Shown in pieces: positions 19,213-51,853 of a DNA stretch of 64,000 nt. The number at the start of each line of letters is the position of its first letter. Positions within the stretch are counted from its first letter, which is position 1. The notes under the pieces were generated by a model. That model searched no databases. It worked only from the letters and a program-made list of their open reading frames with translations, and was not told the DNA's origin. Location of the stretch: IMG/VR virus record IMGVR_UViG_3300027770_000027, positions 1-64,000 of that record; one strand, 5' to 3'. The translations under genes were made by a program, and so were the position numbers.

Positions 19213-19560
19213 ATGAGTCGCTTTGATGATATTATTAAAAACACCTTAAATCAGGTAAATGAAACTGCTTCTATATTGTCAGACATATATTCAAGCACAG
19301 ATCCTCAAAAGGTTACTTTGATTAATCAAGCACTTATAAAGTTGGCACAAAAGACTGGATCCAATCAATTAATGGGAACAGAAAAGGCTGCACTTGATGA
19401 ATTCGGAAAGGCATTTGCTTCTAAGATGACATCCACCACTCCCTCAACCTCTGCAGTCAATCCCACAGGAGCACCTACCACACCAGCGCCCACCACAGCT
19501 GCTGTTGGTCCTGGATCCAATCCAGTAAGTCAACAGATTAGTTCTACAGCAGGATACTAA
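19213..19560 (+). CDS. Hypothetical protein, possible internal head protein
   Basis: Likely start MSRFDDIIKNTLNQVNE after CTAAATA; Thr/Pro-rich tail. Confidence 0.5.
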   Translation: MSRFDDIIKNTLNQVNETASILSDIYSSTDPQKVTLINQALIKLAQKTGSNQLMGTEKAALDEFGKAFASKMTSTTPSTSAVNPTGAPTTPAPTTAAVGPGSNPVSQQISSTAGY

Positions 19561-19570
19561 ATAACTATAT

Positions 19571-20368
19571 ATGGGAAAAAAACCCCGTTCGAAAAGCCGG
19601 CCAATGGCAGAATTAGTATTGGAAAATACTGATGAACCAAAGGATACATCACCAAGAGTCTATCAGAGAGACAAAATAAATTTTGACTTTAATTGTAGAC
19701 CACTTCCGTGGACAGAAAAACAAAAAGCCCTTATCGCTACGTTATTGGATAAAAAAACTAAATGTGTTTTCATAGAAGGACCCGCAGGAACTTCCAAAAC
19801 ATGTACGGCGGTTTATGCTGGTCTACAATTATTGAAACTTAAAAAAGCTTCTGATATTATTTTTGTAAGAAGTGCCGTGGAGAGTGCTGATAGTAAAATT
19901 GGCTACCTGCCCGGTACTATAGATGAAAAGTTTGAAGCTTATATGGCACCGTTTACAGAAAAGATGGAAGAATTTCTAGACTCTGGTACTATTAAAAGGT
20001 TACACACAGATAAAAGAGTTAGTGCTATGCCGGTGAATTACATAAGAGGTCTTCACTGGCCTGCAAAGGTTATTATAGTAGATGAATGTCAAAATATTAC
20101 CTTTAAAGAATTAACAACAACCATTACCCGGTTGGGAGAATTTTCAAAAATTATCTTTTTAGGAGATCCCAAACAATCAGACTTGCCTCCAAATAAATCT
20201 GGAGGATTTGCTAGAATGTGTGAACTATTTTCCGGACAAGATAGTATAGATCATGGAGTTTTTCACTTTAAATTTGACAAAGAAGACATTGTTCGTTCAG
20301 AATTTGTTAAATTTGTGGTGTCTAAATTAGAAGAAACTCCACCATCCCATGAGATGTTTCCGGTATAA
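19571..20368 (+). CDS. phoH: PhoH-family ATPase
   Basis: GPAGTSKT, GYLPG...EK, YIRG, IIVDECQN, TRLGEFSKIIFLGDPKQSD, IVRS. Confidence 0.95.
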   Translation: MGKKPRSKSRPMAELVLENTDEPKDTSPRVYQRDKINFDFNCRPLPWTEKQKALIATLLDKKTKCVFIEGPAGTSKTCTAVYAGLQLLKLKKASDIIFVRSAVESADSKIGYLPGTIDEKFEAYMAPFTEKMEEFLDSGTIKRLHTDKRVSAMPVNYIRGLHWPAKVIIVDECQNITFKELTTTITRLGEFSKIIFLGDPKQSDLPPNKSGGFARMCELFSGQDSIDHGVFHFKFDKEDIVRSEFVKFVVSKLEETPPSHEMFPV

Positions 20369-20383
20369 CCTGTAAGTATACAT

Positions 20384-20575
20384 ATGAGCAATCAGAATCA
20401 AAAACCAGAATATCAAACTCTAGCCAATAAGCCAATTGGATGCACTTATTGTGGCAATCATGTACAAGGAAAAATTGAAGAACAATATGATCCACGTACC
20501 AAAGTTGTCAATAAATTAATTAAGTGGAACTGTGGTCGTTGTGGTAATGTAGTAAGAATAGGCAAACCACAATAA
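20384..20575 (+). CDS. Small zinc-ribbon protein
   Basis: CTYC...CGRC. Confidence 0.55.
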   Translation: MSNQNQKPEYQTLANKPIGCTYCGNHVQGKIEEQYDPRTKVVNKLIKWNCGRCGNVVRIGKPQ

Positions 20576-20582
20576 TTTCTTT

Positions 20583-21065
20583 ATGGACGTGAATAAAATC
20601 TTTAACGAGGCCTTAGACGGACTCTGGAACAATACTAGTTATGGTGGCCAGAGTGACCCTCCTCGAAAAGATTTTAGTCCACAAAGTAGTGCTCAAGGGT
20701 ATAATTTTCCCTATCAAAAAAATAAAGGACCAGTATTTCCCCCGACTGCTCCTGGACCCGAGGCCCCAATAAATCTAGCATGGCCTCTTCAAACCATTAC
20801 ATATGATCTGGCAGACAGTTTTACCTATCTGTTAGCAGCCTCTAATAAGTTAGAAAATTGTAGACAATTAAATACGGCCATATCAAAGAAACAACGAAAG
20901 CAATTAGACTCTCTTCTTACTTTTTCTGCAAAAATTATGACGGCCATACAAAAATTAGATGCAGAGATTGGTTTAGTAGCAAATCTCTCTAATGAACAAC
21001 CCCCGATGAATCCTCATCAAGAAAGAGATCCGAATAGTGTTGCAGTTCCCTTGAAAAATATGTAA
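20583..21065 (+). CDS. Hypothetical protein
   Basis: 160-aa ORF in a tight operon; N-terminal IFNEA. Confidence 0.5.
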   Translation: MDVNKIFNEALDGLWNNTSYGGQSDPPRKDFSPQSSAQGYNFPYQKNKGPVFPPTAPGPEAPINLAWPLQTITYDLADSFTYLLAASNKLENCRQLNTAISKKQRKQLDSLLTFSAKIMTAIQKLDAEIGLVANLSNEQPPMNPHQERDPNSVAVPLKNM

Positions 21066-21068
21066 TAT

Positions 21069-21482
21069 TTGTTTATGAAAATAAACAAAAACTTGTTTGA
21101 CTTTTTGAAGTCAACATCTGTAGTAATGTTTACCTCCTCTCTTGTGGGGTTATCATTTATCCTTCTAGAAAAACCTTTTTGGCCGGCTTTTATTCTAGCG
21201 GTGTGTACACAGTATATACTCTTTTCCTTTGTTGCAAACCTAATCAATAGTTTCTTAGCAGCTTCTGTTAGACAAAAGGAATTAGATGTTCTAGAACCTC
21301 TTTCATCTATTCTCCAATGTGCAACTTGCTCTGCTTCTAATGTTATTACATTTGTGCCTAATCAAAATGAGAGGGTAGAATTTGTATGTGACAGTCCTAC
21401 ATGTGCTAGTAAGAATGTAGTGAATATTAATTTTACAGTGGCTCGTGTCACAGAATTCAATGATCCTATTGAAATTAAATAA
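21069..21482 (+). CDS. Membrane protein with a C-terminal Zn-ribbon
   Basis: Two hydrophobic helices, then CATC...CDSPTC. Confidence 0.55.
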   Translation: MFMKINKNLFDFLKSTSVVMFTSSLVGLSFILLEKPFWPAFILAVCTQYILFSFVANLINSFLAASVRQKELDVLEPLSSILQCATCSASNVITFVPNQNERVEFVCDSPTCASKNVVNINFTVARVTEFNDPIEIK

Positions 21483-21483
21483 T

Positions 21484-21810
21484 ATGAAAACCAAGACAAA
21501 ACCAGAACAGTTCACAGAAGAACCTAAACAAAATCCTTTGGCTTGGTGGGGTGAAACACAAGAAAAGGCCTTAACATTAGCAAAGTGGATGTCTCTGTAT
21601 GAGGCAGTTAATTATATAGCAGACAAAGCTGATGAAAAGCAGATTCCTATTGATGATGTAGATTTTAAACCACTAGATATTCGTGACTATATGGAATCTA
21701 CCCAGGATATCTTTTTACGTAAAATTTTAGAACACGATTATAAAATTCATATCTGTGCCTCCTCTGATAATGTTGTAGACAACGTAGAAGTTGAATTAAA
21801 TCCTACTTAA
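21484..21810 (+). CDS. Hypothetical acidic protein
   Basis: Likely start MKTKTK immediately after the upstream stop. Confidence 0.5.
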   Translation: MKTKTKPEQFTEEPKQNPLAWWGETQEKALTLAKWMSLYEAVNYIADKADEKQIPIDDVDFKPLDIRDYMESTQDIFLRKILEHDYKIHICASSDNVVDNVEVELNPT

Positions 21811-22439
21811 TAATTTCCATAAACAGAAGTTCTGCTGTCTGGGTTATCCACAATGTAATCAAAGTGTTCTTGTGTAGAATGTTCTTCAATGATGTCGTTA
21901 TCATCATGGGTAATATTACCAACACCAGGCCCAGGCGCAGTCGGCTCGAAGCTATAGTTACACCTTTTAGCAGACCAGAACCAAACATAATGTCCTCCGA
22001 GGGCATTTACTTTAAATTCATCAATAGCTTCTGTTATCTCATACACAGTAGCTCCTCGTTTAGGAAATCCTAAACGATCAGATCCATATTCAGACAGTAC
22101 CACTACATCACCAGCCTTGGGTTCTGCAGATACTCCAAAAACTGCTGTAAACATTTCTGGATGAATAACGGAAGCAACCTCCCCATCTGCAACTAAACCA
22201 AATTTAGACAACATAATAGCATCGTTGTTTAAATTTAAATAAACAATTAATGGTTTTGGCACTTCAAAACCAGCCATTGGTTGTTCTCCGTAAAGTTGAT
22301 TAGCAGCTGATAAAGATGTGTTATTAACATAATACATTACTTCCTGACCTTTTATTGAAATCTGTTCTTTCCACCAATTAGAAATCAAATAACGTTCAGA
22401 AGCATTTGTTTGTTTATTTAAATATCGTAAGTTGTCCAT
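21807..22439 (-). CDS. Neck/head-closure protein (T4 gp14-like)
   Basis: ISIKGQEVMYY...LYGE...MLSKFGL...EPKAGDVV...YEIT. Confidence 0.75.
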   Translation of the reverse strand: MDNLRYLNKQTNASERYLISNWWKEQISIKGQEVMYYVNNTSLSAANQLYGEQPMAGFEVPKPLIVYLNLNNDAIMLSKFGLVADGEVASVIHPEMFTAVFGVSAEPKAGDVVVLSEYGSDRLGFPKRGATVYEITEAIDEFKVNALGGHYVWFWSAKRCNYSFEPTAPGPGVGNITHDDNDIIEEHSTQEHFDYIVDNPDSRTSVYGNY

Positions 22440-22440
22440 A

Positions 22441-22925: not shown

Positions 22926-23846
22926 TTACTGATCGTTCCAGAATTTGCCTTGTCTTACATAGTCTGTTTTTTGTCCAGACTTACTCTGTAGAGGGGCAAT
23001 ATTTCCTTTGAATTCTGTGGGCTTACCATCTACCTTAGCACCTTTAGGAACTTGGGCCTTTCCCTTGGCAACATTAACAGCTCCTTTAACAACATTGTTT
23101 TTAGGATTTGTAAAGTTGTTGGCAAGACGTTCAAGATCTACTAAAGCAGTGCCAAGTTCTTCGGCGTCTACTTCTTCTTCAACTTTACTGTCTTCACCGT
23201 CTTCTTCACCACCTTCTTCACCTTCTTCTTCGTTAACGGTGTTTTCTCCAAAGGGATTACCAGTACCTTCTTCTCCTTCTTCGTCTTCTTCTCCTTCTTC
23301 GTCTTCTTCTCCTTCTTCTTCGCCACCTTCTTCATGTTCTTCTTCTTCTTCTTCTTCTTCAGATTCACCTTCTTCGTGTCCTGTGGCCTTTTCCAAAGCA
23401 GCTACGGCTGCTCTTAAAGCATGTAACACTTGAACCATGGGGTCTTCATCTTCTTCAGAGGCTTCTGCTTCTCCTTCACCGGATTCTGCATCACCGCTAA
23501 AATTTAAATCTAAATCACCAGCGGGGGCTCCACCAAAGTTAGGTTGGCTGTTGGCTTCTTCATCAGATTCCCAGTTTTCCTGAGCTAAAATTTTATTATA
23601 AAGAGAATCAAAGGGATTGGTTGAAGCATTAACTAAAGTTTTCTTAAGGGGTTTGGGAGAAGTTTCTGCCCCGTCTGAATTAAGTTCCTTAGAAGCTTCT
23701 TTAGGTTTGTCAACCGTTTCACCTTCTTGTTTGTTGATCTTCACCTTACCGAAATAAGGATCCTTTGAGGGAGTGATATCGGAACCTTTAACGGCTTGAC
23801 CTTCACTTTCGTTTAAGATTTTGTTGTAAGCATCTAGTAATGACAT
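22926..23846 (-). CDS. Highly acidic protein, possible prohead core/scaffold
   Basis: Central poly-Glu tract, basic C-terminus, two ILxE/LAQE motifs. Confidence 0.5.
   Translation of the reverse strand: MSLLDAYNKILNESEGQAVKGSDITPSKDPYFGKVKINKQEGETVDKPKEASKELNSDGAETSPKPLKKTLVNASTNPFDSLYNKILAQENWESDEEANSQPNFGGAPAGDLDLNFSGDAESGEGEAEASEEDEDPMVQVLHALRAAVAALEKATGHEEGESEEEEEEEEHEEGGEEEGEEDEEGEEDEEGEEGTGNPFGENTVNEEEGEEGGEEDGEDSKVEEEVDAEELGTALVDLERLANNFTNPKNNVVKGAVNVAKGKAQVPKGAKVDGKPTEFKGNIAPLQSKSGQKTDYVRQGKFWNDQ
23230..23370 (-). repeat. Coding low-complexity (GAA)n / 18-nt EEGEED repeat
   Basis: ttctccttcttcgtcttc is repeated tandemly within the Glu tract. Confidence 0.7.
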
Positions 23847-25539: not shown

Positions 25540-27795
25540 ATGAGTGATAAAATTCTTCACGTTAAAAAGCGAGACGGTACACTAGTCCCGTTTCAAGTAG
25601 AAAATATTAATAAAGTTATCAAGTGGGCTGTGGACGGTATTACAGGTGTAAGTGTTTCAGATATTGAAATAAATACAAAGCTCAATCTTGTGGACGGCAT
25701 TTCTACTAAAGAAATTCACAAAGTTTTAATAGAATCTACCATTAATCTTTTTAATGAGGAAAATCCTAATTATCAATGGGTAGCATCTCGCCTATTAACT
25801 TATCAATTACGCAAAGATGTATGGGGAGGCAAAAATCCTCCGAGACTTTATGATTTTATTACACTTAATACTGAACGTAAGGTATATCATCCCGAGATCC
25901 TCCTTGCTTATTCTAAAACAGAAATAGATAAATTAGATGATAAAATTTCTCATAATAGAGATTATGATTTTACCTTTTCTGGAATAAAACAATTATGTGA
26001 TAAATATTTGATCCAAAATCGTAAGTCTAAAGAGATTTTTGAGACCCCTCAGTTTGCGTATATGTTGGCAGCAATGGTTAGTTACATTAACTATCCCGTT
26101 GAAACTCGCTTACAGTACGTTAAAAGAGCCTATGACAGATTCAGCAAATTTAAAATCAATCTCCCGACACCTCAAATGGCAGGAATTAGAGGATTGCTCA
26201 AACAATACGCCTCATGCTGTCTCATTGATGTGGACGATACTAAAGAATCCATTTTCAGCTCTAATACTGCTGCTGGCTTTGCTACTACCCAAAGATATGG
26301 CATCGGATTAAATTTTGGGAGAATTCGGGGTATTGGTACTGAAATTAAAAACGGCAGTGTCATTCATACGGGCATCATTCCCTTTCTCAAAGTATTTGAA
26401 GCCACTGTAAAGAGCTGTCAACAAAATGGTATTCGAGGTGGTGGAGCCACTGTTAATTTTCCTTTCTGGCATTATGAAATTGAAGATGTATTGGTTCTTA
26501 AAAACAATGGAGGAACAGAAGATAATAGAGTTCGTAAAGTTGATTATGTAATTCAATTTTCAAAATTATTTTATGAGAGATTCATGAGAAATGAATTCAT
26601 CACTTTGTTTTCTCCACATGAGGTTCCTGATCTGACAGAAGCTTTTGGACTTCCTCATTTTGATGAATTGTACGAAAAATATGAAAAGGATAAAAGTATT
26701 CGTTACAAGCGCAAGATCAAAGCAACCACTTTGATGTCACAATTTGTTAAAGAAAGAACAGAGACTGGAAGAATTTATGTAATGAATATAGATCACTGTA
26801 ATGAGCATGGATCTTTTGAGGATCGAGTTTGTATGACCAATCTTTGTGTTGAGGTTACTCATCCTACTAAGCCTATTCAACATATTGATGATCCGGATGC
26901 AGAAATTGGTATTTGTGTATTATCTGCTATTAACGTATTGGAAATTAAGGACGATCAGGACTTGGTAGACACCTGTGACATTATTGTTCGTATGTTAGAT
27001 GAATTGATTGATTATCAAGAATATTTTACAAAAGCCGCAGAGAACTTTACCAAAAAACGTAGAAGCCTTGGAGTTGGTATTACCAATTTAGCAGCATTGC
27101 TAGCTAAGAACAATCTCAAATACACAGATGTAGACGCTCCAAATTTTGTAGATGCGTTAATGGAAAAGATTCAATATAACCTTATTTCCGCCTCAGTTGA
27201 TTTGGCCGCTGAAAAGGGTGTGTGTGAAAAATTTAACAATACAAAATATTCAAAAGGTATTTTACCCATTGACACATATAAGAAGAAAATAGATGCGGTT
27301 GTTACTCGTAAACCCACATTAGATTGGGAATCTTTGAGACAGAGGATTATTACAACCGGAATGAGACACTCAACACTTACGGCATTAATGCCTTGTGAAT
27401 CTAGTTCTGTAATTCAAAATACTACAAACGGAATTGAACCACCCCGGTCTCTATTAACATATAAGGGATCAAAGGCAAATTCTGTGCCGGTACTTGTACC
27501 CAATTATAGCACTTGTAAAAATAAATATACTTTACAATTTGATATGCTTAATAATATGGGTTATATCAATATCGTAGCAGCCCTTCAAAAATGGGTAGAT
27601 ATGTCTATTTCTGCAAATCTTTATTACAATTATGAACACTATCCAAACAAAGCATTGCCGGATGCTTTGTTAATTAAAGAATTGTTATATGCATACAGCA
27701 TGGGTGTAAAGACTTTATATTATAGCAACACCTATGATGGAGACAAACAATCTGCAACTGATCAAGGATGTTCAAGTGGTGCTTGTGCAATTTAA
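25540..27795 (+). CDS. nrdA: Ribonucleotide reductase class Ia alpha subunit with ATP-cone
   Basis: VKKRDG ATP-cone, PTPQMAG, ASCCLI, TNLCVE, CVLS, LMPCESSS, KTLYY, C-terminal CSSGAC. Confidence 0.98.
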   Translation: MSDKILHVKKRDGTLVPFQVENINKVIKWAVDGITGVSVSDIEINTKLNLVDGISTKEIHKVLIESTINLFNEENPNYQWVASRLLTYQLRKDVWGGKNPPRLYDFITLNTERKVYHPEILLAYSKTEIDKLDDKISHNRDYDFTFSGIKQLCDKYLIQNRKSKEIFETPQFAYMLAAMVSYINYPVETRLQYVKRAYDRFSKFKINLPTPQMAGIRGLLKQYASCCLIDVDDTKESIFSSNTAAGFATTQRYGIGLNFGRIRGIGTEIKNGSVIHTGIIPFLKVFEATVKSCQQNGIRGGGATVNFPFWHYEIEDVLVLKNNGGTEDNRVRKVDYVIQFSKLFYERFMRNEFITLFSPHEVPDLTEAFGLPHFDELYEKYEKDKSIRYKRKIKATTLMSQFVKERTETGRIYVMNIDHCNEHGSFEDRVCMTNLCVEVTHPTKPIQHIDDPDAEIGICVLSAINVLEIKDDQDLVDTCDIIVRMLDELIDYQEYFTKAAENFTKKRRSLGVGITNLAALLAKNNLKYTDVDAPNFVDALMEKIQYNLISASVDLAAEKGVCEKFNNTKYSKGILPIDTYKKKIDAVVTRKPTLDWESLRQRIITTGMRHSTLTALMPCESSSVIQNTTNGIEPPRSLLTYKGSKANSVPVLVPNYSTCKNKYTLQFDMLNNMGYINIVAALQKWVDMSISANLYYNYEHYPNKALPDALLIKELLYAYSMGVKTLYYSNTYDGDKQSATDQGCSSGACAI

Positions 27796-28858: not shown

Positions 28859-29304
28859 GCTTTAGAAGATACTAATTTATGTATCTCAACTACAAGAGCA
28901 TCAACACGTTTAGTCAAATCTAAAATTTCTTTAGAAGTTTCAGCGGCTAACTGTTGATGCTCCAAGGAAGATTTGTGTAACTCTTCCCGATGTTCTGCAT
29001 CAGATTTTTCCCAGGCTTTGTCTCTTTCTGCTTGTCTAGTTTGAGCAAGTAAGATGAGAGGGGCTGCATATGCTGCTTGTGTACTAAATGCTAAATTTAG
29101 TAAAATAAAAGGATAAGGATCAAATGTTAATTTTTCAAAACAATTGTATACAATCCATATCACTACAAATATAGATTGGCCTATTAAAAATGTAGGAGTG
29201 CCGAAAAAACGAGCAAAGTTTTCAGCATAGGCACCAAACCGATTATCTCCAAATGGTTGGTGATTGACAAATCCGTCTTTATCTAAAGAAGAATTATTTT
29301 CCAT
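28855..29304 (-). CDS. DUF1003-family membrane protein
   Basis: FARFFGTPTF...FDPYPFILLNLAFSTQAAYAAPLILLAQTRQAERD. Confidence 0.85.
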   Translation of the reverse strand: MENNSSLDKDGFVNHQPFGDNRFGAYAENFARFFGTPTFLIGQSIFVVIWIVYNCFEKLTFDPYPFILLNLAFSTQAAYAAPLILLAQTRQAERDKAWEKSDAEHREELHKSSLEHQQLAAETSKEILDLTKRVDALVVEIHKLVSSKA

Positions 29305-29473
29305 TCTTCTTTTTTGGATTAGCAATTGATTTAGCAATTGCAGCATTACGCTTTTTTAGGTAACCGTCTGTTTTATCAACTTTGCCATCATCATTGACAT
29401 CGTCTTTAGAAAAATCAAGTTTCTTTTTAGTGGCTTCAAGAATTGAACTAACAAATGCATCAAAAGAGATCAT
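29294..29473 (-). CDS. 59-aa protein with an EF-hand/dockerin-like loop (below ORF-track cutoff)
   Basis: Hand translation MISFDAFVSSILEATKKKLDFSKDDVNDDGKVDKTDGYLKKRNAAIAKSIANPKKKNGK; GTAAATA upstream. Confidence 0.65.
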   Translation of the reverse strand: MISFDAFVSSILEATKKKLDFSKDDVNDDGKVDKTDGYLKKRNAAIAKSIANPKKKNGK

Positions 29474-30502: not shown

Positions 30503-30868
30503 TTAAACTGCTGGTGGTGGCTGAGTAGAAGCATCTGGAGCTTTGTCTTCGGCTTTTTTTGTCAACTTAATATCAAGAGACGGATTGTTTTTAAGCATTG
30601 CGAGAGCATAGTTGTTTGCTCCTTTTTTCCAATCAAATGCTTTTGGTTGGCCTTGTTGCTTAAATACTTTGCCATTGATTAATAGGTACCACGGACCTCT
30701 ATCATGATCTCTAAAACGCGCGGCTTCTTTTTTACCACCTGGGTCATCTTGATAATCATCATATCCTCCACCCAAAGCATTTCCGTCTGCGTCATGATAT
30801 TTGTCATAACGACTTTGACCAAACCTTGATTCCTTTAATATCTGATTGACTGCTTTATCGAAGTTCAT
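30503..30868 (-). CDS. Hypothetical protein, possible internal head protein
   Basis: MNFDKAVNQILKES N-terminus. Confidence 0.5.
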   Translation of the reverse strand: MNFDKAVNQILKESRFGQSRYDKYHDADGNALGGGYDDYQDDPGGKKEAARFRDHDRGPWYLLINGKVFKQQGQPKAFDWKKGANNYALAMLKNNPSLDIKLTKKAEDKAPDASTQPPPAV

Positions 30869-31463: not shown

Positions 31464-31628
31464 CTATTTCATTCTCAAGTCGTTTTTACTTATTATTTCA
31501 GGTTTTGAATTTTTAGTGGCCTTAACCTTATATAAGTCAGGAGTGACTTCTATAACATAAACAATTTGACCAAATGCTAGTGTTGGATGTGTTTTGATAC
31601 AAACAACACCTTGTGGATAGTTATTCAT
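31464..31628 (-). CDS. 54-aa hypothetical protein (below ORF-track cutoff)
   Basis: Hand translation MNNYPQGVVCIKTHPTLAFGQIVYVIEVTPDLYKVKATKNSKPEIISKNDLRMK; overlaps the upstream stop. Confidence 0.45.
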   Translation of the reverse strand: MNNYPQGVVCIKTHPTLAFGQIVYVIEVTPDLYKVKATKNSKPEIISKNDLRMK

Positions 31629-31803
31629 TTAAAGTATTTCCTATTAAACTAATAAAAAAATTAGTAGACTCTTTAGAATTTATTTCTATTGCAGCCCTTT
31701 GAGCCAAAGCTTTCTTTTTAGATAAAGATTTTTTACTAAAACATTTGCCAGAAGGCTTACACACTTTGTATCCCTTTCCCTTTTTTCTTATTTTGTATGG
31801 CAT
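31621..31803 (-). CDS. Small basic protein
   Basis: MPYKIRKKGKGYKVCKPSGKCFSKK...; GATAAGTA upstream. Confidence 0.55.
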   Translation of the reverse strand: MPYKIRKKGKGYKVCKPSGKCFSKKSLSKKKALAQRAAIEINSKESTNFFISLIGNTLNE

Positions 31804-31844
31804 AACTATACTTATCTTTTCTTTCTCTAGACTAAATAGATTAT

Positions 31845-34547
31845 ATGAATTTTAGGGAATTTTTTACAGAGGCTGGTAAGATCTTGTCCAAACAGGGTAT
31901 AGAACTATCTAGAGTAAACAAGCAAGACTTTTTAACAGCCAAAGCAAAATTAAACCCTATTCTTCAAAGGGCTGGGTTGACTGCTGGGTGGACTGCCGGT
32001 GGTGCGGGGAGTTTTGATCCAGAACACCCATATGGTGGTGGTGGCAGAGATGACTCTGGAGATATAGACATTTTAATAGATCCTGTAGAATTAATTCAAA
32101 AATTTCCTAAAGACATTGCAGAATACGTAAAAGAATTCAACGCAAGAGCCAAAACAGAAGGTAAAAAACCTATAGGTGATGTAGCTTTGAATAATGCTTT
32201 AGCAATACCTGCCAAGAAAAGTGAACTACAAATAAGTGCTAGTAAATGGGAGCTAGCAAAATATATGTCTCAAAATGGTTACGAAACTACTCCAGGAACT
32301 TTGACGTTACAATATTCTGTAAACGGAAAAAATCATTCTGTAGATTTAATTTTAAGACCCAAAAGTGCCTGGGAGTTACACACTCACGACTTTACAAAAG
32401 ATGCTGGAATGAGAGGAAGTGATCTTTGGTTAAAGATTTATCCTCTCTTGGCTAAGTTAGCTAGTAAAACAAAACTTCCACCAGATCCAAAAACTGGAGA
32501 AGAAAAGGGCAATTTACAATTTAGTCCAGAAAGGGGAGTAGTAGATAGAAATACCAATGAAGTGATAACTTCCAATAAAAATGAGATAGCAAAACTTTTA
32601 TTAGGACCAGATGCATCTGCTGTAGATTTAGCTAGTCTTTCTGGCATTAAAAATAAATTAATGAATCAACCCGAAAAATGGAATGCAATCAAAGAATTTT
32701 ATCCAATTAAAAATGAAAGCATGGACTTAGGAGTTTTAATGGAAGGCATTGACCATCCAGAGGATAATATTATTAATAACGGATATGAAGGAGCCGAACA
32801 GGCATTTAAACAAATGTCTTCTCTGGTCAAAAATAGTAAGACAGTTACCATTAAATGGGATGGTTTTCCAGCAATTATTTTTGGGTGGAAAGAAATTCCT
32901 TCTAAAAATAATCCAAACGGTCAATTTTTGTTTGTAGACAAACACATGTTTGATAAAATGGCTAAGAGTAAACTAGAGTTTACATCTATAGAAGATTATG
33001 ACAAAGGTCGCGGAGCCAATAGACAAAGCCTATGGGAAGCCGCAGCAATGATGGTCCCTACAATGAAAAAAATTGTTCCCATGACTCAAGATCAATACTT
33101 TTTCGGAGATCTTATGTGGTCTGGAATGCCTAAGATTCAAAACGGATATTATGTATTTGAACCCAACACCGTAAAGTATCAGGTCAAAATTGACTCTGAC
33201 TTGGGAAACACTATAGGCAAGAGTGTAGGTGGTATAGCCATACACACCTTTATACCATCTATGGGCGCGGAGGATAGACCGTTGAAGGGATTGCAGGGAT
33301 TAAAACAAAACAATGGAATAACTTTCTTAGTTGGGGAAATTAAAGAAAAACCAAAAATTGCTCTGTCTACAGACCAGTTATCTCAAACTCAAGAAATTCT
33401 TAACTCAAATAAACATGTTGTCAAACAATTTGTGGGTGATCTTAAAACGTTAAAATCTGCAGTTGTTTTATCCAGCATGTCGCCGTTTATTACTTCGATG
33501 TTAAGAGACAATGATATAGCATCTGATATAGTTCCTAGATTTTTAACATTTCTTAAAACTAGATTATCTGAAGGACAGTCTATAAAATTATTAGGCATTA
33601 ATAAAGACGGATGGCTTTATAAAGAAGGTGCTCGCGGTTTAATAGGAATTTGGTCTATATGGGCGGCTTTAACTGAATTAAAACTTAACATTAAAAAGCA
33701 AATAGACCTTCAACAAACCGGTCTTCCTGTACAGGCTCGGATAGGCGAAGAAGATTCTCATGAAGGATATGTTTTTGGATCCGGAGCTAATAAATTAAAA
33801 CTTATAGATCGACTAGGATTTAGTAAAGCAAATTTTGCCAAAAATAATGTTGCTGGAGAAGATGTTTCTTCAAAATTAAATATGCCCGCAGCTTCATTTT
33901 GTTTTGGTCGAATGAATCCACCAACTGTGGGTCACAAAGCTTTGATGCAAAAAACTATCGAAAAGGGTGGTACTAATTCTTTTATATTTTTAAGTAATAC
34001 TCAAAATTCAAAAAAAGACCCACTAAATCCAGATATTAAATCTCAATTTGTAAAATTAATTTATCCAGAATTTGCTCCACATGTTGTTGATGAGAAAGTA
34101 TTAAATCCGATTTATGCTGCAAATTATCTATATGCTAAAGGTTTTAGAAATTTAATTTTTATTGCTGGCTCTGATAGATTGGGTGATAATCAAGGTAGTC
34201 TTGAAAAATTATTGACTAGTTGGAACAGTGGGGCTATTAGAACCAAAGATACTAATTTTGGCCCACAAGGAAGAGAACAAGTGGCTTTAAGATTTGTTAG
34301 CAGTGGAGACAGAGATCCAGATGCTACCGAAGGAGACGTAAGTGGTATATCTGCTTCTTTAGCGAGAAAGTTAGCAACTGAAGGCAATGAACAAGGATTT
34401 TATAAAGCCACAGGAGTTTCTTCTAATCTAGTAGTTGCTGGTAAAAATCTCTATCAAGCTGTAAGAGAAGGAATGGGACTTTCAACTGTTAAACCACCCG
34501 TATCTGAAAGTATCATTAGTTTCAAAGAATTTCTCTTTAAAACTTAA
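31845..34547 (+). CDS. Three-domain nucleotidyltransferase fusion (Pol-beta-like NTase + ligase-fold/DUF6267-like + HxGH cytidylyl/adenylyltransferase)
   Basis: GS(55-56)...DID(73-75); KWDG(337), GDL(421), EGY(640), KLKLID(650); FGRMNPPTVGH(687-697), AGSDR, ISAS..R. Confidence 0.8.
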   Translation: MNFREFFTEAGKILSKQGIELSRVNKQDFLTAKAKLNPILQRAGLTAGWTAGGAGSFDPEHPYGGGGRDDSGDIDILIDPVELIQKFPKDIAEYVKEFNARAKTEGKKPIGDVALNNALAIPAKKSELQISASKWELAKYMSQNGYETTPGTLTLQYSVNGKNHSVDLILRPKSAWELHTHDFTKDAGMRGSDLWLKIYPLLAKLASKTKLPPDPKTGEEKGNLQFSPERGVVDRNTNEVITSNKNEIAKLLLGPDASAVDLASLSGIKNKLMNQPEKWNAIKEFYPIKNESMDLGVLMEGIDHPEDNIINNGYEGAEQAFKQMSSLVKNSKTVTIKWDGFPAIIFGWKEIPSKNNPNGQFLFVDKHMFDKMAKSKLEFTSIEDYDKGRGANRQSLWEAAAMMVPTMKKIVPMTQDQYFFGDLMWSGMPKIQNGYYVFEPNTVKYQVKIDSDLGNTIGKSVGGIAIHTFIPSMGAEDRPLKGLQGLKQNNGITFLVGEIKEKPKIALSTDQLSQTQEILNSNKHVVKQFVGDLKTLKSAVVLSSMSPFITSMLRDNDIASDIVPRFLTFLKTRLSEGQSIKLLGINKDGWLYKEGARGLIGIWSIWAALTELKLNIKKQIDLQQTGLPVQARIGEEDSHEGYVFGSGANKLKLIDRLGFSKANFAKNNVAGEDVSSKLNMPAASFCFGRMNPPTVGHKALMQKTIEKGGTNSFIFLSNTQNSKKDPLNPDIKSQFVKLIYPEFAPHVVDEKVLNPIYAANYLYAKGFRNLIFIAGSDRLGDNQGSLEKLLTSWNSGAIRTKDTNFGPQGREQVALRFVSSGDRDPDATEGDVSGISASLARKLATEGNEQGFYKATGVSSNLVVAGKNLYQAVREGMGLSTVKPPVSESIISFKEFLFKT

Positions 34548-37633: not shown

Positions 37634-39001
37634 TTATTGGCAAGCCCAATCTACAGATTCATTTGTATTCAATTGAATAGATTTGGTGGATTTGGGATAA
37701 GTCAACATCAAGTTTAATTGATCCGGTTCAAATCCTCCAGAAGCAGTTCTGACCTGTAATATAAATTGTTTGACTTTATTGTTTTTACCTTTAGTCCATA
37801 ATTCTATATCAAAGTGTTTTTTCTTCTTTGTTTTGGATTCAAAATATGGATAAGAAATATATCCACCATCACTTAGTGGTTCACCTATAAAATCTAAAAC
37901 ATCCTGTGGTGTCATTAAACTTTCAAGTTGCATACCATCTTTTTCCAGGTCTCTCAAATAGTAATAACCATATGAACAAGCGGCTTGAACCATCTCTTTT
38001 ATATATTGTGAAGAACCTGGAATGATATCTCTTTTGAACGAAGTTTGATTACCCTCAATTTTTCCCATATAAGCCGCGCCAGTTTTACTTAATCTATCCA
38101 ATGCAAATTCTACATCAAAATTTAAATTGGTTAACATGTGTCCTACAAAGCTTTTAGTTCCGTTTGGATCAAATCCAAAAGCTGGTTTTTTAGTATCTGT
38201 ATAAAAGAATAAACCAGTTGCTCCTGAGTTTAATATAGTGTATCCGTCTATATTTTTAAAAGATATATAAATTTCCTTTCCGTTGATATCTTTTCCTATC
38301 ATATCTGCTATGGCAGAACCATAATCTTCACATTTACCTGTAAAGGGTCTTCGAGTAGAACCCTTCCGAGATTCTACCGATACAATCTGTATATTGAATT
38401 TTTCTTTGAATAAATTTATTACAACATTATCAGCTGGTCTTTCACTTTCAGAAGAAGCTTTAAGAGTATCTAACATTTGTTTTTCGGCTTGATTTCCTTT
38501 ATTTCCAAAAGTTCCTTTGCCGATTACTATCTTGCACTCTGTTGAAAAATCTGGTTGATTAGTTTCTGGATTAATTTTTGCTATTAAATATGTATAAAAT
38601 TTTGAAGAAAGAGAATCAGCTGTTCTTCCAATGCCTTGAGATGTTTCGTCAGGCACATCGTTGTAAGGATTACTTCTCTTCACACAGACATATCCGGATC
38701 CTTGGATAATAGCATTCAATTCGTCCGCGGATAAATTTGTATATTTGTCTGCAGATTCTTGATCCTGAGCTGTAATTCTGATGTGAGGATGTTTTTCAGC
38801 AAATACCTTAGAAGTTTTATTTGCTATCTTTACCTTTCCCGGAAAAAAATTTCTCAAAACTACACCAGCTTCTAGTAGTCTTTTACCCAAAGGAGAGGCA
38901 GCTGCCTCTAAGATGCTGCTATAAGTTTCTGTTAAAGATTGTTTTTTTACAGTATTTGATTGTTTGGAAAGGCTACTCCAAAAATGGTGATTGAAAGGCA
39001 T
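37634..39001 (-). CDS. Putative restriction-endonuclease-fold (PD-(D/E)xK variant) nuclease
   Basis: GNKGNQAEKQML helix, IADMIG, IYISFK; AATAAATA upstream. Confidence 0.5.
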   Translation of the reverse strand: MPFNHHFWSSLSKQSNTVKKQSLTETYSSILEAAASPLGKRLLEAGVVLRNFFPGKVKIANKTSKVFAEKHPHIRITAQDQESADKYTNLSADELNAIIQGSGYVCVKRSNPYNDVPDETSQGIGRTADSLSSKFYTYLIAKINPETNQPDFSTECKIVIGKGTFGNKGNQAEKQMLDTLKASSESERPADNVVINLFKEKFNIQIVSVESRKGSTRRPFTGKCEDYGSAIADMIGKDINGKEIYISFKNIDGYTILNSGATGLFFYTDTKKPAFGFDPNGTKSFVGHMLTNLNFDVEFALDRLSKTGAAYMGKIEGNQTSFKRDIIPGSSQYIKEMVQAACSYGYYYLRDLEKDGMQLESLMTPQDVLDFIGEPLSDGGYISYPYFESKTKKKKHFDIELWTKGKNNKVKQFILQVRTASGGFEPDQLNLMLTYPKSTKSIQLNTNESVDWACQ

Positions 39002-39410: not shown

Positions 39411-39835
39411 TGGTGGAGGCGAGGGGAGTTGAACCCCTGTCCTGAAAACTTAGACTTTAGCGTCTACAATCATATTTTGCTAACATTATAGGGACAAAGG
39501 GTTGTTAGCTAGTTTTTAGTCTACCTGCTGGCGCGAAGTCTACCAGCTACTCTCGGCTTGTTTTTATTGAGCTTCACGATCTTACTCAAACCTACTTAGG
39601 TTACTCCAGAAATTTTAATAGGATCCATTTCTGTTTGTTAGGCTGCGAGCTCGTACATCTCTTCTTCTGCGAGGTAATCCTCGAAGTTGTTGATGATGTG
39701 GGTTGCTTCAGCTAAGAGTGCTTCTGTATTATCAGTTGCATTTATTTGTTTGTCCAGAGATTTTAACGAGGCCAACCAGACTTCCTCGGATTGCAACTAA
39801 AGTTTTCAGCGCTCAGTCGAAACCAATGCGCCCCC
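39411..39835 (-). ncRNA. ssrA: tmRNA
   Basis: 5' GGGGGCG pairs with 3' CGCCUCC-ACCA (G3.U70); GGUUUCGAC; T-arm GGGGUUCAACUCCCC; resume context AUAAAU-GCA; tag ORF 39739-39638 ending LAA*. Confidence 0.95.
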
Positions 39836-48603: not shown

Positions 48604-48771
48604 TTAAAACAATTCTTCTGCAATTCCTAGGGTTTCTGCAATGATAATAAGCATACCCGCAACTGGAATTGCCATATTATTATTTAGAAGTAATACAATT
48701 CCTGCCCAGACTCGAAAGCCGGATTTGATGAGAGAAATGATTAAATGTTTTTTAGGATCTGGAGTTTTCAT
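48604..48771 (-). CDS. 55-aa membrane protein (below ORF-track cutoff)
   Basis: Hand translation MKTPDPKKHLIISLIKSGFRVWAGIVLLLNNNMAIPVAGMLIIIAETLGIAEELF. Confidence 0.55.
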   Translation of the reverse strand: MKTPDPKKHLIISLIKSGFRVWAGIVLLLNNNMAIPVAGMLIIIAETLGIAEELF

Positions 48772-48809
48772 AAAAAAAGAAAGGGCTCTGGATTTACTCC
48801 AGAGCCCTT
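48772..48809 (-). terminator. Intrinsic terminator
   Basis: AAGGGCTCTGGA-gtaaa-TCCAGAGCCCTT followed by a U-tract on the minus strand. Confidence 0.85.
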
Positions 48810-48821
48810 AGAGGTTATTTT

Positions 48822-49067
48822 TTAGCGGCTACGGCGGTTGCGGGCAACGCGTGCGAAGCGACCCTTGTTGTCACGAACATTGTGGAATCGTGTCTGCAAG
48901 ATAACATTGTTAGTGCGATCAACCATACCAATTACAGTATACTTGCTATGATTAATGCTCTTTTCAACTAGACACATCTTATAAGTCTTTTCAGTGGTAG
49001 GTTCGACATTACGACCAGTAAGACAAGTGATGTTCTTGATGACGATGTTTGGGTTTGTTGTACTCAT
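48822..49067 (-). CDS. Small basic protein
   Basis: Arg-rich C-terminus RDNKGRFARVARNRRSR; has its own terminator. Confidence 0.55.
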   Translation of the reverse strand: MSTTNPNIVIKNITCLTGRNVEPTTEKTYKMCLVEKSINHSKYTVIGMVDRTNNVILQTRFHNVRDNKGRFARVARNRRSR

Positions 49068-49130
49068 ATGTTGTGATATTATAATAACTCATATGAGCAG
49101 GGAAGTCACCAAGAAAAGATAAGTATTTAT

Positions 49131-49727
49131 ATGAAGGGGTTTGTAAAGCTCTGGCTAACTGTAATAACCTTTTTTGGATTATTGCTATTTGGTTCTCAAT
49201 TAAGTTTGGGAGCCACACCATTAAGAGAATCTCAATTGATACGAAGGGTTTACCTAGATGTTCTAGGGTTTCCTCCAAGTCCTAAAGAGTTAGATTGGTA
49301 TTTAACATATAACTCTAAATCGTATGAAACAGCCGTGGACTGGGTGATTAATAGTCACGGTGCTTACTTTCAAAATTTAGATCCGGTTGAAATGAAGAGG
49401 TATTTGTGTTCTATAGAGTATAAAACAACTCCTCAAATTAAAATAATACCTTTTCAATTAGAAATGATAATCAAATACCAGTGTGGTGATCTTAGTCTTT
49501 CTCTAAATGACGCAAAAATCAAATTAACAAAAGATGCAGTTGGTTTTGGAGAGGGCAATGTTTTAGACACTATAGATTATATCGCAGAAAGTCTAATGGC
49601 TAGAGTTTCTCATGCAGAAGAAGCTACTAGTTTGTTAAAAATATATAAAAAATACCCCTCTGAAGCAGAGGGGTATTTTAACGTTGTGTCTGAAATAATG
49701 ACTTATAAAGATTATCTTTACAAGTAA
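49131..49727 (+). CDS. Exported protein with a DUF1549/DUF1553-like (PSCyt2/PSD1) motif
   Basis: Signal-peptide-like N-terminus; QLIRRVYLDVLGFPPSPKEL; LMARVSHAEE. Confidence 0.6.
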   Translation: MKGFVKLWLTVITFFGLLLFGSQLSLGATPLRESQLIRRVYLDVLGFPPSPKELDWYLTYNSKSYETAVDWVINSHGAYFQNLDPVEMKRYLCSIEYKTTPQIKIIPFQLEMIIKYQCGDLSLSLNDAKIKLTKDAVGFGEGNVLDTIDYIAESLMARVSHAEEATSLLKIYKKYPSEAEGYFNVVSEIMTYKDYLYK

Positions 49728-49734
49728 TATTTAT

Positions 49735-49956
49735 TTATTTCCAAATAATATTCCATTCAAAATGTTTTATTACATTCAAAGCATTTTTATTTTGGATAGT
49801 CCAATCAATATCTTCCGGGGGATTATGCTTTTGTATAATTTGATTTCTCAATTCTAACAAATGTTTTACAGTTTCTGCATTAGAATAATGTAATTTTACA
49901 TTACCTAGTTGATTATCCAATTCTTGTATTATGGAATATAATAAAGAGGTGTCCAT
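49735..49956 (-). CDS. Hypothetical protein
   Basis: Likely start MDTSLL overlaps the upstream TAA. Confidence 0.45.
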   Translation of the reverse strand: MDTSLLYSIIQELDNQLGNVKLHYSNAETVKHLLELRNQIIQKHNPPEDIDWTIQNKNALNVIKHFEWNIIWK

Positions 49957-50132
49957 TAAATTCCAACGTGGTTTTCGTCCCACAGGTCTAAATTGTGTTC
50001 GTGATGCCATTTGATAGCAATATCGCCGAGTGTCTGGTGGAGATTAAAGGCCCACTTTGTAGGAATCTTCCAGAGAAGAGGGCTAACTGCTAAGATGGCT
50101 TTACCTAAAAATCGAAGAACGGTTCTTTTCAT
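49956..50132 (-). CDS. 58-aa hypothetical protein (below ORF-track cutoff)
   Basis: MKRTVLRFLGKAILAVSPLLWKIP...; TTCCCC...TATAAT promoter 6 nt upstream. Confidence 0.55.
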   Translation of the reverse strand: MKRTVLRFLGKAILAVSPLLWKIPTKWAFNLHQTLGDIAIKWHHEHNLDLWDENHVGI

Positions 50133-50175
50133 GTCTTAATTATACTAACTCTTTTGGGGAATCTCTCGTAAAAAC

Positions 50176-50712
50176 TTACACAATCGGGGTCTGCTTCTGA
50201 GTAGCTACACTCACTGGAGTTTGTTTAGCCCCTCCTCCTGATATTTCGTCCGTCCTCCACTTATCCGTATACATATACTCTCTAAAGGAGGGCATATTTT
50301 GACCCCGAAGTTTTAATCCTTCAGAATTTCCCCACTTATCATAAGCATCAATTTCTCTAGTAGTGTTTGGTTTGCCTTCTATTTGAGGATCATAAGAACC
50401 AGGTTTAAATGCCGAGCTGCTCGTAGATACAGAACTAATTCGATAGTTTTTAATGAGAGGATATGCCTTTGAAAGTCTTTCACCCACTGGAGTCTTTTCC
50501 AATTTTTTCCAAATTGCCCCAGCATTTAGTTGAGAGCTTCCCTGATGTTGAACGTCATCCATTCTGACACCAGCTGCTAATTCTGGATCAGATTCTATAG
50601 TGTTTATTAAATCTTGAACGTCTCTTGAGTTGTCTATGAGGTCGGGTAAGGAATATCCTTGTTTTTGAGAGCCTCCTGTTACAACTTGTTCAAAGAAATA
50701 GTATCGTTTCAT
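50176..50712 (-). CDS. Hypothetical protein, possible internal head protein
   Basis: MKRYYFFEQ; (TAAA)n late-type motifs upstream. Confidence 0.5.
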   Translation of the reverse strand: MKRYYFFEQVVTGGSQKQGYSLPDLIDNSRDVQDLINTIESDPELAAGVRMDDVQHQGSSQLNAGAIWKKLEKTPVGERLSKAYPLIKNYRISSVSTSSSAFKPGSYDPQIEGKPNTTREIDAYDKWGNSEGLKLRGQNMPSFREYMYTDKWRTDEISGGGAKQTPVSVATQKQTPIV

Positions 50713-50747
50713 ATATCTTTATTTATTTATTTATTTATCATAAAAAA

Positions 50748-50829
50748 TGGTCCACGGGCAGGATTTCTATGTAGCTACATTCCAATCACGACAAGACCTA
50801 TATACCATTGGGTTTGTGGTTACCCGTGA
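50748..50829 (-). ncRNA. tRNA-like element with a CCA end but no canonical T-arm
   Basis: UCACGGG/CCCGUGG-A-CCA acceptor and ACCA/UGGU D-like stem; first-order neighbour of the tRNA cluster. Confidence 0.5.
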
Positions 50830-50836
50830 ACCAAAG

Positions 50837-50913
50837 TGGTGCAATCGGCGGGATTCGAACCCGCGACCAACAGATTAGAAATCTGTTGCTCTATCCAGCT
50901 GAGCTACGATTGC
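50837..50913 (-). tRNA. tRNA-Arg(UCU)
   Basis: GCAATCG...ACAGA-TT-TCT-AA-TCTGT...GGTTCGAATCCC...CGATTGC-ACCA. Confidence 0.95.
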
Positions 50914-50923
50914 TTGTTAAAAA

Positions 50924-50998
50924 TGGAGCGGGTAGAGGGAATTGAACCCTCCTATCTAGTTTGGAAGACTAGGGCATTAGCCACTATGCTATACCCGC
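50924..50998 (-). tRNA. tRNA-Gly(UCC)
   Basis: GCGGGTA...CTAGT-CT-TCC-AA-ACTAG...GGGTTCAATTCCC...TACCCGC-TCCA. Confidence 0.95.
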
Positions 50999-50999
50999 A

Positions 51000-51073
51000 T
51001 GGCACGTCCTGAGGGAATCGAACTCTCATCAACGGTTTTGGAGACCGCAGTTTTACCATTAAACTAAAGACGC
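51000..51073 (-). tRNA. tRNA-Trp(CCA)
   Basis: GCGTCTT...GCGGT-CT-CCA-AA-ACCGT...GAGTTCGATTCCC...AGGACGT-GCCA. Confidence 0.93.
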
Positions 51074-51115
51074 ATTGAGTATATTTTATATCAAAAAATC
51101 TTTAAAGCAACAAAA

Positions 51116-51853
51116 TTAAGAAATTAATGTTTTATTGATAAGGTTTACGTAAAAATTATCAAAGAAATTTGCAGGCCTTGCGGCAGATTTTCCAGCAGCG
51201 GGCAAACCACCTCTTCTGCGTTTAGAGGTTCCAGCGGCTGGTAATTTGCCCCTTCTAGGCTTGGTAACTGGCGGTTCTGTTAAAGGGGGTTCTGTAGAGG
51301 TTCCTGGTTCAGTTGAAGGAGGGGGTGTTCCAGATTCAGCTGGAGGGGGCTCTGTAGTTGTTCCTGGGTCAGTTGAAGTGGCAGGATCTGTTGTTCCGGG
51401 ATCTGTTGAAGTAGCTGGATCTGTTGTTCCGGGGTCAGTTGGAGGAGGGGTTGTAATTGCATCTGGTTCTGTAGGGTTAATGTTACTCGATCCTGAAATA
51501 GTTTCTACTGTCTTAGATATGTTGGAAACTAGGTCTGTAATGTTTTGAGTACTTGGTCTTCTTCCTTTTGGAAAAAGTCCTAATTTGTAAAAATCATTCA
51601 ACATATCAGTTGCGTGAGATTTTGCTATAGACTGAATTTTAGCTGAGGTCCCTTCTTTGGCAGCATCTTGAGTATTAATACCCGCTCCTCCAGTTCCACG
51701 AACAATAGCCTTTCCTACAGCACCTACATTAGAAGCCATAGTACTTGCAGCCGTTTTAGCTCCTTGCAGCCTTGCACCTATGCGGCTAAACAGCCCTTCT
51801 TCTAAAGTATTTCCGTTTAAAGCATCTTGTACATATTCATTAAATGATCCCAT
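51116..51853 (-). CDS. Hypothetical protein with Pro/Thr repeats, possible internal head protein
   Basis: MGSFNEYVQDALNGNTLEEG; DPGTTDPATST repeated; GTATAAATA upstream. Confidence 0.55.
   Translation of the reverse strand: MGSFNEYVQDALNGNTLEEGLFSRIGARLQGAKTAASTMASNVGAVGKAIVRGTGGAGINTQDAAKEGTSAKIQSIAKSHATDMLNDFYKLGLFPKGRRPSTQNITDLVSNISKTVETISGSSNINPTEPDAITTPPPTDPGTTDPATSTDPGTTDPATSTDPGTTTEPPPAESGTPPPSTEPGTSTEPPLTEPPVTKPRRGKLPAAGTSKRRRGGLPAAGKSAARPANFFDNFYVNLINKTLIS

Follow-up and report, generated by a model that had tools for sequence, protein, structure and literature searches.

We analysed bases 1–64,000 (the window) of a single IMG/VR virus record of 227,352 bp, which is rated complete and has a GC content of 36%, with regard to a family of short peptide leaders found at the N-termini of unrelated proteins. 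The tail sheath gene lies inside the window (16586–19129, minus strand). In the sheath and the major capsid protein, identity to the nearest cultured phages, the T4-like cyanomyoviruses, is ~35%; since the identity is only at this level, the phage is a far T4 relative without a cultured representative, and judged by these proteins it is an uncultured, very distant T4-like myovirus. Two relatives, G001 (195 kb) and G002 (217 kb), were compared over their full length with this genome (G000). A sequence-only reading of the window had listed nine open reading frames (ORFs) whose starts resemble the capsid-targeting sequence (CTS) of T4 internal proteins, and all nine N-terminal strings translate exactly as it quoted them at the coordinates given. 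These ORFs, together with a tenth that carries the motif at its C-terminus, are the following; each is named below by the position of its first base, and a slash stands after the last Glu of the leader.

19213–19560, plus strand: 115-aa ORF; leader MSRFDDIIKNTLNQVNE (residues 1–17), then a Ser/Thr/Pro-rich body
20583–21065, plus strand: 160-aa ORF; short leader-like start MDVNKIFNE/A
22926–23846, minus strand: 306-aa ORF; leader MSLLDAYNKILNE/S, a long Glu/Asp/Gly tract and a basic C-terminus
29294–29473, minus strand: 59-aa very basic ORF; leader MISFDAFVSSILE/A
30503–30868, minus strand: 121-aa ORF; leader MNFDKAVNQILKE/S, the best match to the long consensus
31621–31803, minus strand: 60-aa basic ORF; starts MPYKIRKKGKGYKV and has a C-terminal motif copy ending exactly on Glu, NFFISLIGNTLNE
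31845–34547, plus strand: 900-aa protein; leader MNFREFFTE/A, an unknown 300-aa domain, DUF6267 and a cytidylyltransferase-like domain
37634–39001, minus strand: 455-aa ORF; conserved 33-aa N-terminal segment ending SLTETYSSILE/AA
50176–50712, minus strand: 178-aa ORF; starts MKRYYFFE/Q
51116–51853, minus strand: 245-aa ORF; leader MGSFNEYVQDALNGNTLEE/G, a Pro/Thr-rich repeat, a basic stretch and a C-terminal copy, FFDNFYVNLINKTLIS

The leader is a short amphipathic peptide directly after the initiator Met, with the motif beginning at residue 2–6, and it is found in two forms. The long form has 13 residues, M-x-F-[DNE]-x-h-h-x-x-h-L-x-E (h: hydrophobic), and extends one helical turn beyond the short form, F-x-x-F-h-x-E, which has 9–10 residues and the spacing of the T4 CTS (aromatic, hydrophobic at +3/+4, any residue, Glu). 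Both forms finish with hydrophobic-x-Glu followed by a small or polar residue; by analogy with T4, this end is the recognition site of T4-type prohead proteases. About 12–20 proteins of the genome carry a leader, eight or nine of them within the window. As had been proposed, the carriers are not paralogues: all-vs-all BLASTP gave one weak link, from 22926–23846 to an ORF outside the window. The motif, its N-terminal enrichment, its conservation, its modularity and, in the genomes checked, its co-occurrence with a protease were observed directly and are presented in turn.

Concerning the enrichment, unsupervised expectation maximisation (EM) on the N-termini of all three genomes converged on K-F-[ED]-x-L-[YLV]-x-x-L-L-E, with a log-likelihood ratio of 400 vs 227–271 across eight shuffles. 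A matrix trained on G001 and G002 only and applied to G000 at ≥10 bits matched 10/290 N-termini vs 7/2998 interior windows (p = 3e-7). In the cleanest test, the matrix came solely from the metagenomic homologue leaders of one family, and that family was excluded from testing. At the same threshold the N-termini were enriched 14-fold in G000 (p = 4e-4), 38-fold in G001 (p = 2e-8) and 34-fold in G002 (p = 3e-7), and there were zero N-terminal matches in T4 or cyanophage S-SM1. Across the one-family matrix tests the enrichment over interior positions was 10–38-fold, and 30868, 178633, 51853, 190508 and 19213 were among the top N-termini of G000. By both EM and held-out matrices, the motif exceeds chance. 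The T4 control has a GC content of 35%, close to the 36% of this genome; as T4 is equally AT-rich, the motif is clade-specific and not a by-product of AT-rich 5' codons. Cross-validated EM for G001 and G002 reached either the related 'M-R/K-x-K-D-x-I-L-L-E-x-A-Y' leader family or a generic helix and gave no significant result for these two genomes. Two earlier approaches were set aside: loose regular expressions ([FLIVYM]xE and F-polar-x-h-h) were enriched just 1.3–2-fold and did not discriminate, and a first matrix made from seven sequences of the sequence-only reading with weak pseudocounts was overfitted and generalised poorly.

The leader is retained at the same gene positions (30868, 39001, 19213, 23846) across loci that are 51–72% identical in conserved genes, even where the remainder of the protein escapes BLAST, and the alignments are indel-rich directly after the Glu. 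In 30868, the leader scores 16.1 bits with a matrix learned from an unrelated family. Its syntenic ORFs retain the leader alone (MNFDKLVNQLLKE, MKFNEIANQIIAE); the body beyond it has no BLAST match in these relatives at 1e-5, and the leader shows synonymous differences at nearly every conserved codon. Such differences at conserved leader residues indicate that it is the peptide, rather than a DNA element, that is under selection, and a repeated DNA element as the source of the motif was ruled out, since the conserved residues use differing codons. The 29473 orthologue in two related loci (L006 and L007) begins MNTYDAYVFELLE/A, with synonymous and conservative codon changes; the mature part of the 29473 protein has an isoelectric point (pI) of 9.9. 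In 19213 (6.6 bits with the one-family matrix), the orthologues beside the sheath gene retain the leader (MSKFNSIFQKTFSNISE, MKKFETILNKVIEE) and become indel-rich right after it. Orthologues of the 306-aa ORF begin MAIINDYLNVLNE, MSLVKSYLSVLEE and MIDPIAKAYLKVIEE. This ORF also has the internal motif copy that had been pointed out, FDSLYNKILAQE, at residues 79–90 (about 23577–23612); the pI of its mature part is 4.1, and its acidic tail resembles that of the T4 core protein gp67.

In 39001 the motif is internal (residues 22–33) and closes the conserved N-terminal segment. Its relatives have SLSEIYSTILE/S and TLSEMYRMVVE/N at this place, followed by a barely alignable body; in a protein atlas the nearest named clusters of the 455-aa protein are restriction endonucleases, which we take as a lead only. 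The three C-terminal helix-like ends that had been described are all present: NFFISLIGNTLNE in 31803, SFKEFLFKT in the gene ending at 34547 and FDNFYVNLINKTLIS in the gene ending at 51116. Relatives of 31803 (pI 10.2) end FSNLIESVLNE and FESLIVSALYE. The 51853 ORF scores 9.5 bits with the one-family matrix; its residues ~50–200, with the repeat unit TDPGTT(D/E)P, resemble the C-terminal parts of several large fibre-like proteins of G001 and G002, and a related-locus search with it gave no match. The membership claimed for the nine ORFs holds in part: on sequence grounds, seven are good members. The place of 20583 is uncertain, as its matrix score is low (5.0 bits) and its sequence stays conserved beyond the Glu; its orthologues begin MTDMDKLFQE/A, MIDLNKILNE/S and MDLDKIIKE/S. 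The 50712 ORF is probably not a member; neither the EM-trained nor the one-family matrix scored it, and no relatives of it were found.

Nearly all carriers are unannotated in Pfam and PHROG scans; 20 carrier ORFs were scanned, and none hit an internal-protein family in either database. A tblastn search of cultured phages with the 160-, 306- and 60-aa ORFs gave no match, and a cluster look-up returned nine homologues with NCBI records, none with an informative name.

The modularity of the leader is best seen in a very basic domain of ~75 aa, here called 'CTKVTG', which is encoded outside the window.

Genome 99712–99981: 'CTKVTG' domain, very basic, ~75 aa

The mature part is 81% identical between G000 and G002, and the leader is swapped: a long MKFNELVNFLLE in G000 is replaced by a short T4-like MKTFKEFYLEE in G002. 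We read all 120 metagenomic clusters of this domain, and all have an N-terminal leader of 12–32 residues, with an aromatic residue at position 2–4 in 98/120. When the junction is defined as the last Glu before the first Cys, the residue at P3 is L, V or I in 110/120 clusters (92%) and the spacer from the junction to the first Cys is five residues long in 86/120; longer leaders hold two or three such sites. The mean charge is -3 for the leader and +20 for the mature domain (76 aa). Homologues without a leader are found in five cultured phages that are not T4-like: the Pelagibacter phages HTVC106P and Kolga, the Roseobacter phages CRP-738 and CRP-3, and a Flavobacterium podovirus. The leader is a modular add-on to unrelated mature domains.

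The T4-type head module of the genome lies outside the window and consists of the following genes.

Genome 159984–161456: gp23 homologue (major capsid protein)
Genome 161525–162418: gp22-like scaffold
Genome 162437–162664: core-like ORF, 75 aa
Genome 162680–163381: Peptidase_S77, T4-type prohead protease (gp21-like)

Peptidase_S77 was found in G000, G001 and G002 alike, and it was not found in the genomes of three of the five phages with leaderless homologues, which were the three searched. Leaders therefore occur in three protease-bearing genomes and the leaderless domain in three cultured genomes without the protease. Sites of the expected type are also seen in the head proteins. The gp23 of the three genomes has WC[LI]xE/[TSA] where conservation yields to a variable Gly-rich stretch, the gp21 homologue has LLVE at residues 8–11 (LLIE in the T4 counterpart) and the gp22-like scaffold has [LI][SN]E at residue 17. 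From these [LI]-x-E sites in the capsid, scaffold and protease proteins, the specificity of the protease is plausibly conserved. The scaffold, core and protease proteins also begin with helices that resemble the leaders.

The largest carrier, the 900-aa protein of 31845, matches DUF6267 in Pfam (E = 8e-35) and cytidyltransferase families in PHROGs. Its C-terminus, SFKEFLFKT, is a repeat of its leader, and the orthologues retain both ends; three more carriers bear the motif at both ends. Residues 677–895 are 30% identical (E = 4e-21) to SSM1_190 of cyanophage S-SM1 (T4-GC190, 'cytidyltransferase'), which begins MKKFSAFLNE/A. SSM1_190 was detected in purified S-SM1 virions with 25 peptide counts, and its neighbours GC1453, GC1454 and GC1455 were also detected in virions (Table S8, PMC3037559); the publication makes no mention of a targeting leader or of processing (PMC3037559). 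The only experimental anchor is thus a homologue of one carrier's domain, in S-SM1 and not in this phage. SSM1_190 is a separate protein of 387 aa, whereas in the window the domain is fused to DUF6267 and to an extra N-terminal domain. In S-SM1 (Synechococcus phage, 146.4–151.3 kb; locus L120), GC1453, GC190, GC1454 and GC1455 are four adjacent non-T4 genes; two of them start with CTS-like leaders (MKKFSAFLNE and MLSFKELQE), and the gene preceding the four begins like DUF6267. From this arrangement, homologues of two of these genes seem to be joined in the 900-aa protein, which has an additional N-terminal domain. Sequence searches against solved structures with the 900- and 455-aa proteins gave no match. 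The claim that the cargo includes enzymes stands to the extent of this one nucleotidyltransferase-like protein.

The statement that nearly all of these genes have the late promoter motif is right in so far as TAA[AG]TA lies ≤25 nt from the ATG in 8/9 of those listed (mostly at 11–14 nt); the same applies to 83/295 ORFs overall, most structural genes included. In each of G000, G001 and G002, its frequency before leader genes is two to three times that before other genes. TAAATA lies 11 nt upstream of 19213 and 30868, 12 nt upstream of 29473, 31845 and 39001, 13 nt upstream of 51853 and 21 nt upstream of 23846; TAAGTA lies 11 nt upstream of 31803, two TAAATA precede 50712, and 20583 has neither. 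The element resembles the T4 late promoter core. Its position is near-fixed at 11–14 nt before many ATGs (e.g. 19202–19207 and 31833–31838), so that no Shine–Dalgarno-like spacing is left, and the transcripts may lack a leader or possess just a very short 5' untranslated region. A second start-proximal signal is found at 61–76 kb of the genome, namely TAAGAT[AT]AT[AT]TAC on the gene strand followed by ATGATG, and is repeated; it precedes small minus-strand ORFs that begin with Met-Met (window 61407, 61682, 62015, 63238 and 63966 onward). This element differs from TAA[AG]TA and may mark an early class of genes.

A whole-genome scan gave further leader-type N-termini outside the window, among them the following.

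Adjoining the capsid gene: leader MNFESFYKES
Elsewhere in the genome: leaders MKFNELVNFLLEK, MSLFENLCENYLEE, MQFNSFVQNLLDE and MSNKFQQLYEN
Elsewhere in the genome: four ORFs starting MRTKD[ST]ILLEQAY..V.E

In the MRTKD ORFs, the second half of the start corresponds to the 306-aa ORF's leader; beyond the leader, one of the four also has weak homology to the 306-aa ORF. Based on composition, three groups of carriers can be distinguished. Tiny and very basic proteins (pI 9.7–10.7) are encoded at 29473, 31803 and genome positions 99712, 93614 and 190508, acidic tracts are found in the 306-aa ORF, with its two leader copies, and at genome 105643–106035, and the third group consists of larger proteins. 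Judged from sequence, these groups are reminiscent of T4 head contents. The repertoire of carriers differs strongly between related genomes.

In T4, Alt is a host-modifying ADP-ribosyltransferase packaged in the head, and the internal protein IPI is an anti-restriction protein. Glu-to-Asp variants of T4 leaders are blocked in processing and still targeted. The T4 leaders and cleavage sites, taken from the T4 record, are the following.

T4 IPI: MKTFKEF..TITE/A
T4 IPII and IPIII: MKTYQEFIAE/A
T4 gp22: MLKEQLIAE/A
T4 gp21: MNEPQLLIE/T
T4 gp67: MEGLIE/A, with an acidic tail besides
T4 gp23: FLTE/AEIGG

The T4 gp21 protease cleaves after L/I-x-E, and the first ten residues of IPIII are sufficient for targeting (PMC9026906). 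Within the T4 CTS, residues 4 and 7 serve targeting and residues 8 and 10 processing (Mullaney and Black, via PMC9026906), and Alt is trimmed at both ends (PMC9026906). The variable internal proteins of T4 function after injection (PMC3012670). The likeness to the leaders studied here is close: both follow the initiator Met of unrelated, often small basic proteins and have an aromatic residue at position 3–4, hydrophobic residues 3 and 4 positions on and a hydrophobic-x-Glu end followed by Ala or Ser. The short-class leaders of the clade (MKTFKEFYLEE, MVKTFKEFFIE/S, MNFREFFTE/A and MNFESFYKE/S) match the T4 spacing exactly, and two of them share the first seven residues with IPI. T4 and this phage also have the same protease family, each encodes a scaffold and a capsid protein, and in both the cargo varies among relatives. 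When applied to T4, the short-class pattern picks ipII, ipIII and one further ORF; the latter (NC_000866 18966–19130, minus strand, 54 aa) begins MKTFKEFIKED, the same start as in IPI.

There are also differences. The dominant form in this clade has 13 residues, one helical turn longer than the T4 CTS and with its own consensus, and there are ~12–20 carriers per genome, unlike the handful in T4. Unlike those of the T4 internal proteins, the leaders may be duplicated within the propeptide or repeated C-terminally, and the mature proteins are not homologous to them. The 900-aa protein is like Alt in being a nucleotidyltransferase-like protein with an N-terminal leader and a C-terminal repeat; it differs in consisting of DUF6267 and a cytidylyltransferase-like domain, and C-terminal processing is conjectured here.

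Based on these comparisons, we lean, with moderate confidence, towards the leaders being T4-style capsid-targeting propeptides of a far-T4 clade that has a longer consensus of its own and a larger, variable cargo. The carrier genes would be expressed late; the leader helix would bind the scaffolding core, so that the carriers are built into the prohead, and the gp21-like protease would cut after the Glu and free the mature protein inside the head. The mature cargo would comprise at least one nucleotidyltransferase-like enzyme, besides acidic core-like proteins and DNA-binding-like proteins that are small and very basic; part of this cargo may exit with the DNA on infection. A few proteins have a second, C-terminal copy, as T4 Alt has propeptides at both ends. 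Core binding, cleavage, virion residence and injection are steps that we infer only, by analogy with T4. The comparison with the T4 CTS made by the sequence-only reading is borne out by the presence of the protease, scaffold and capsid genes, the T4 spacing, the modular leaders, the leaderless homologues and the S-SM1 virion homologue. Its wider proposal, that the cargo is packaged and injected, is partly supported: the CTS likeness stands, and the acidic tracts or protamine-like basic domains of several carriers point to prohead-core or DNA-condensing proteins rather than to injected effectors.

Several points weigh against the T4-style reading. Every step past the existence of the motif argues from analogy, and the likeness to T4 appears as pattern and spacing with no demonstrable homology; the long-form matrix gives no T4 N-terminus ≥6 bits, T4's own leaders included. 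The putative gp23 cut site comes from an alignment that places the T4 site opposite a gap. At C-termini the motif is weakly enriched (5/290 vs 13/2999). Three ORFs (20583, with LWN, 31845 and the one at genome 155858) remain conserved beyond the Glu, as a folded N-terminal domain would, and some carriers lie among small, presumably early genes without the upstream motif.

A more far-reaching form of the T4-style reading is possible and we hold it tentatively: the T4 targeting principle may have been turned into a general loading code, a helix of 9–13 residues that can be N-terminal, duplicated or C-terminal and that loads a large, fast-changing cargo, many of whose members would be injected as first-strike counter-defence factors. 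Protamine-like DNA binders, acidic core proteins and the nucleotidyltransferase-like enzyme would be part of this cargo, with a nuclease as a possible further member. In that case, the proteins that an uncultured phage injects could be predicted by the leader, with no more than the sequence to hand.

It is less likely, if still to be reckoned with, that the leader stays uncleaved and serves as a docking helix for a different shared partner (a chaperone, the portal, the tail or baseplate, a replication or transcription hub, the membrane or a host protein) and that entry into the head is not needed. Motif copies at C-termini and inside proteins would fit this, as would the carriers amid small early-looking genes without TAA[AG]TA and the resemblance of the middle of 51116–51853 to fibre-like proteins, and the evidence for encapsidation of the carriers is indirect. 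However, the leader nearly always ends in a T4 protease site (P3 is L, I or V in 110/120), and in the genomes checked it is present only where Peptidase_S77 is present, the same domain being leaderless in five cultured phages (three searched, without the protease). The spacing also matches the experimentally mapped targeting and processing residues of T4, the scaffold, core and protease proteins start with similar helices, and T4 Alt is a precedent for C-terminal propeptides.

A reading that we consider rather unlikely has targeting and processing as proposed, with carriers that are mostly assembly parts and DNA-packing material instead of an injected arsenal: internal peptides, components of the core or scaffold, and DNA condensers of the protamine type. 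The long acidic tracts of the 306-aa ORF and of genome 105643–106035 are like T4 gp67, five carriers are tiny and extremely basic (pI 9.7–10.7), and several adjoin head or tail genes. The repertoire, however, varies strongly between relatives, which is the pattern of the T4 internal proteins that act post-injection (PMC3012670), and one carrier is a large nucleotidyltransferase-like protein. That the leaders have no common function and come from AT-rich 5' codons (Asn, Phe, Lys, Ile, Glu) and frequent amphipathic N-terminal helices is largely excluded: the genome has 36% GC, a loose regular expression is just ~2-fold enriched at N-termini and an EM run on interior windows also yields a generic helix motif, but T4 (same GC) and the T4-like S-SM1 have no N-terminal enrichment with the same matrix, the conserved leader residues are kept through differing synonymous codons, a mature domain that is 81% identical or homologous may bear another leader or none, and the matrix from one family finds the other carriers.

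Two further loading systems were compared. The T4-related prohead protease of giant phages (phiKZ, 201phi2-1, SPN3US) cleaves many head-internal proteins after Glu, with little else determining the site; P3 is small there (S/A/G-x-E) and the propeptides are long and dissimilar, whereas the clade has L, I or V at P3 and a short shared helix. With L, V or I at P3 in 92% of the leaders, an identity with phiKZ-like propeptides was rejected. Encapsulin cargo-loading peptides are likewise short terminal peptides that send unrelated cargo inside an HK97-fold shell, but they attach to the shell protein itself, usually sit at the C-terminus, undergo no proteolytic removal and follow a different consensus. 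This identity was also rejected, the motif being mainly N-terminal, with a protease-site end, in a phage with a T4-type capsid and scaffold.

If the leaders are T4-style propeptides, a simple sequence signature would mark the head-travelling proteins of uncultured T4-like phages and give a shortlist of candidate injected counter-defence proteins without homology-based annotation. The T4 loading mechanism would then be ancient and diversified in length, copy number and terminus, and new targeting tags would be available for loading foreign proteins into phage capsids. The leader-bearing and leaderless copies of one basic domain are a natural experiment in capsid recruitment.

Other features of the genome are the following. 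The window contains a full-length transfer-messenger RNA (tmRNA) gene (39411–39835, minus strand; Rfam RF00023, 132.6 bits, E = 1e-51), whose tag as given by ARAGORN is acidic and unusually long (33 residues); a tmRNA look-alike stretch is found at the syntenic place in relative L006. A cluster of three tRNAs, Arg-TCT, Gly-TCC and Trp-CCA, is located at 50837–51073 (minus strand). The large subunit of ribonucleotide reductase is intact in the window (25540–27795) and in other relatives, and its homologue in relative L004 (1729–4446) is split into two ORFs (1729–3378 and 3391–4446). An island of 50–55% GC in this 36% GC genome covers 60000–64000 of the window, with few convincing ORFs in that part, continues to ~65.5 kb and is seen again near 70 kb. 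Outside the window, genome 180306–182936 contains two paralogous ORFs, 33% identical, with twin-arginine-like N-termini (RREFL and RRDFL).

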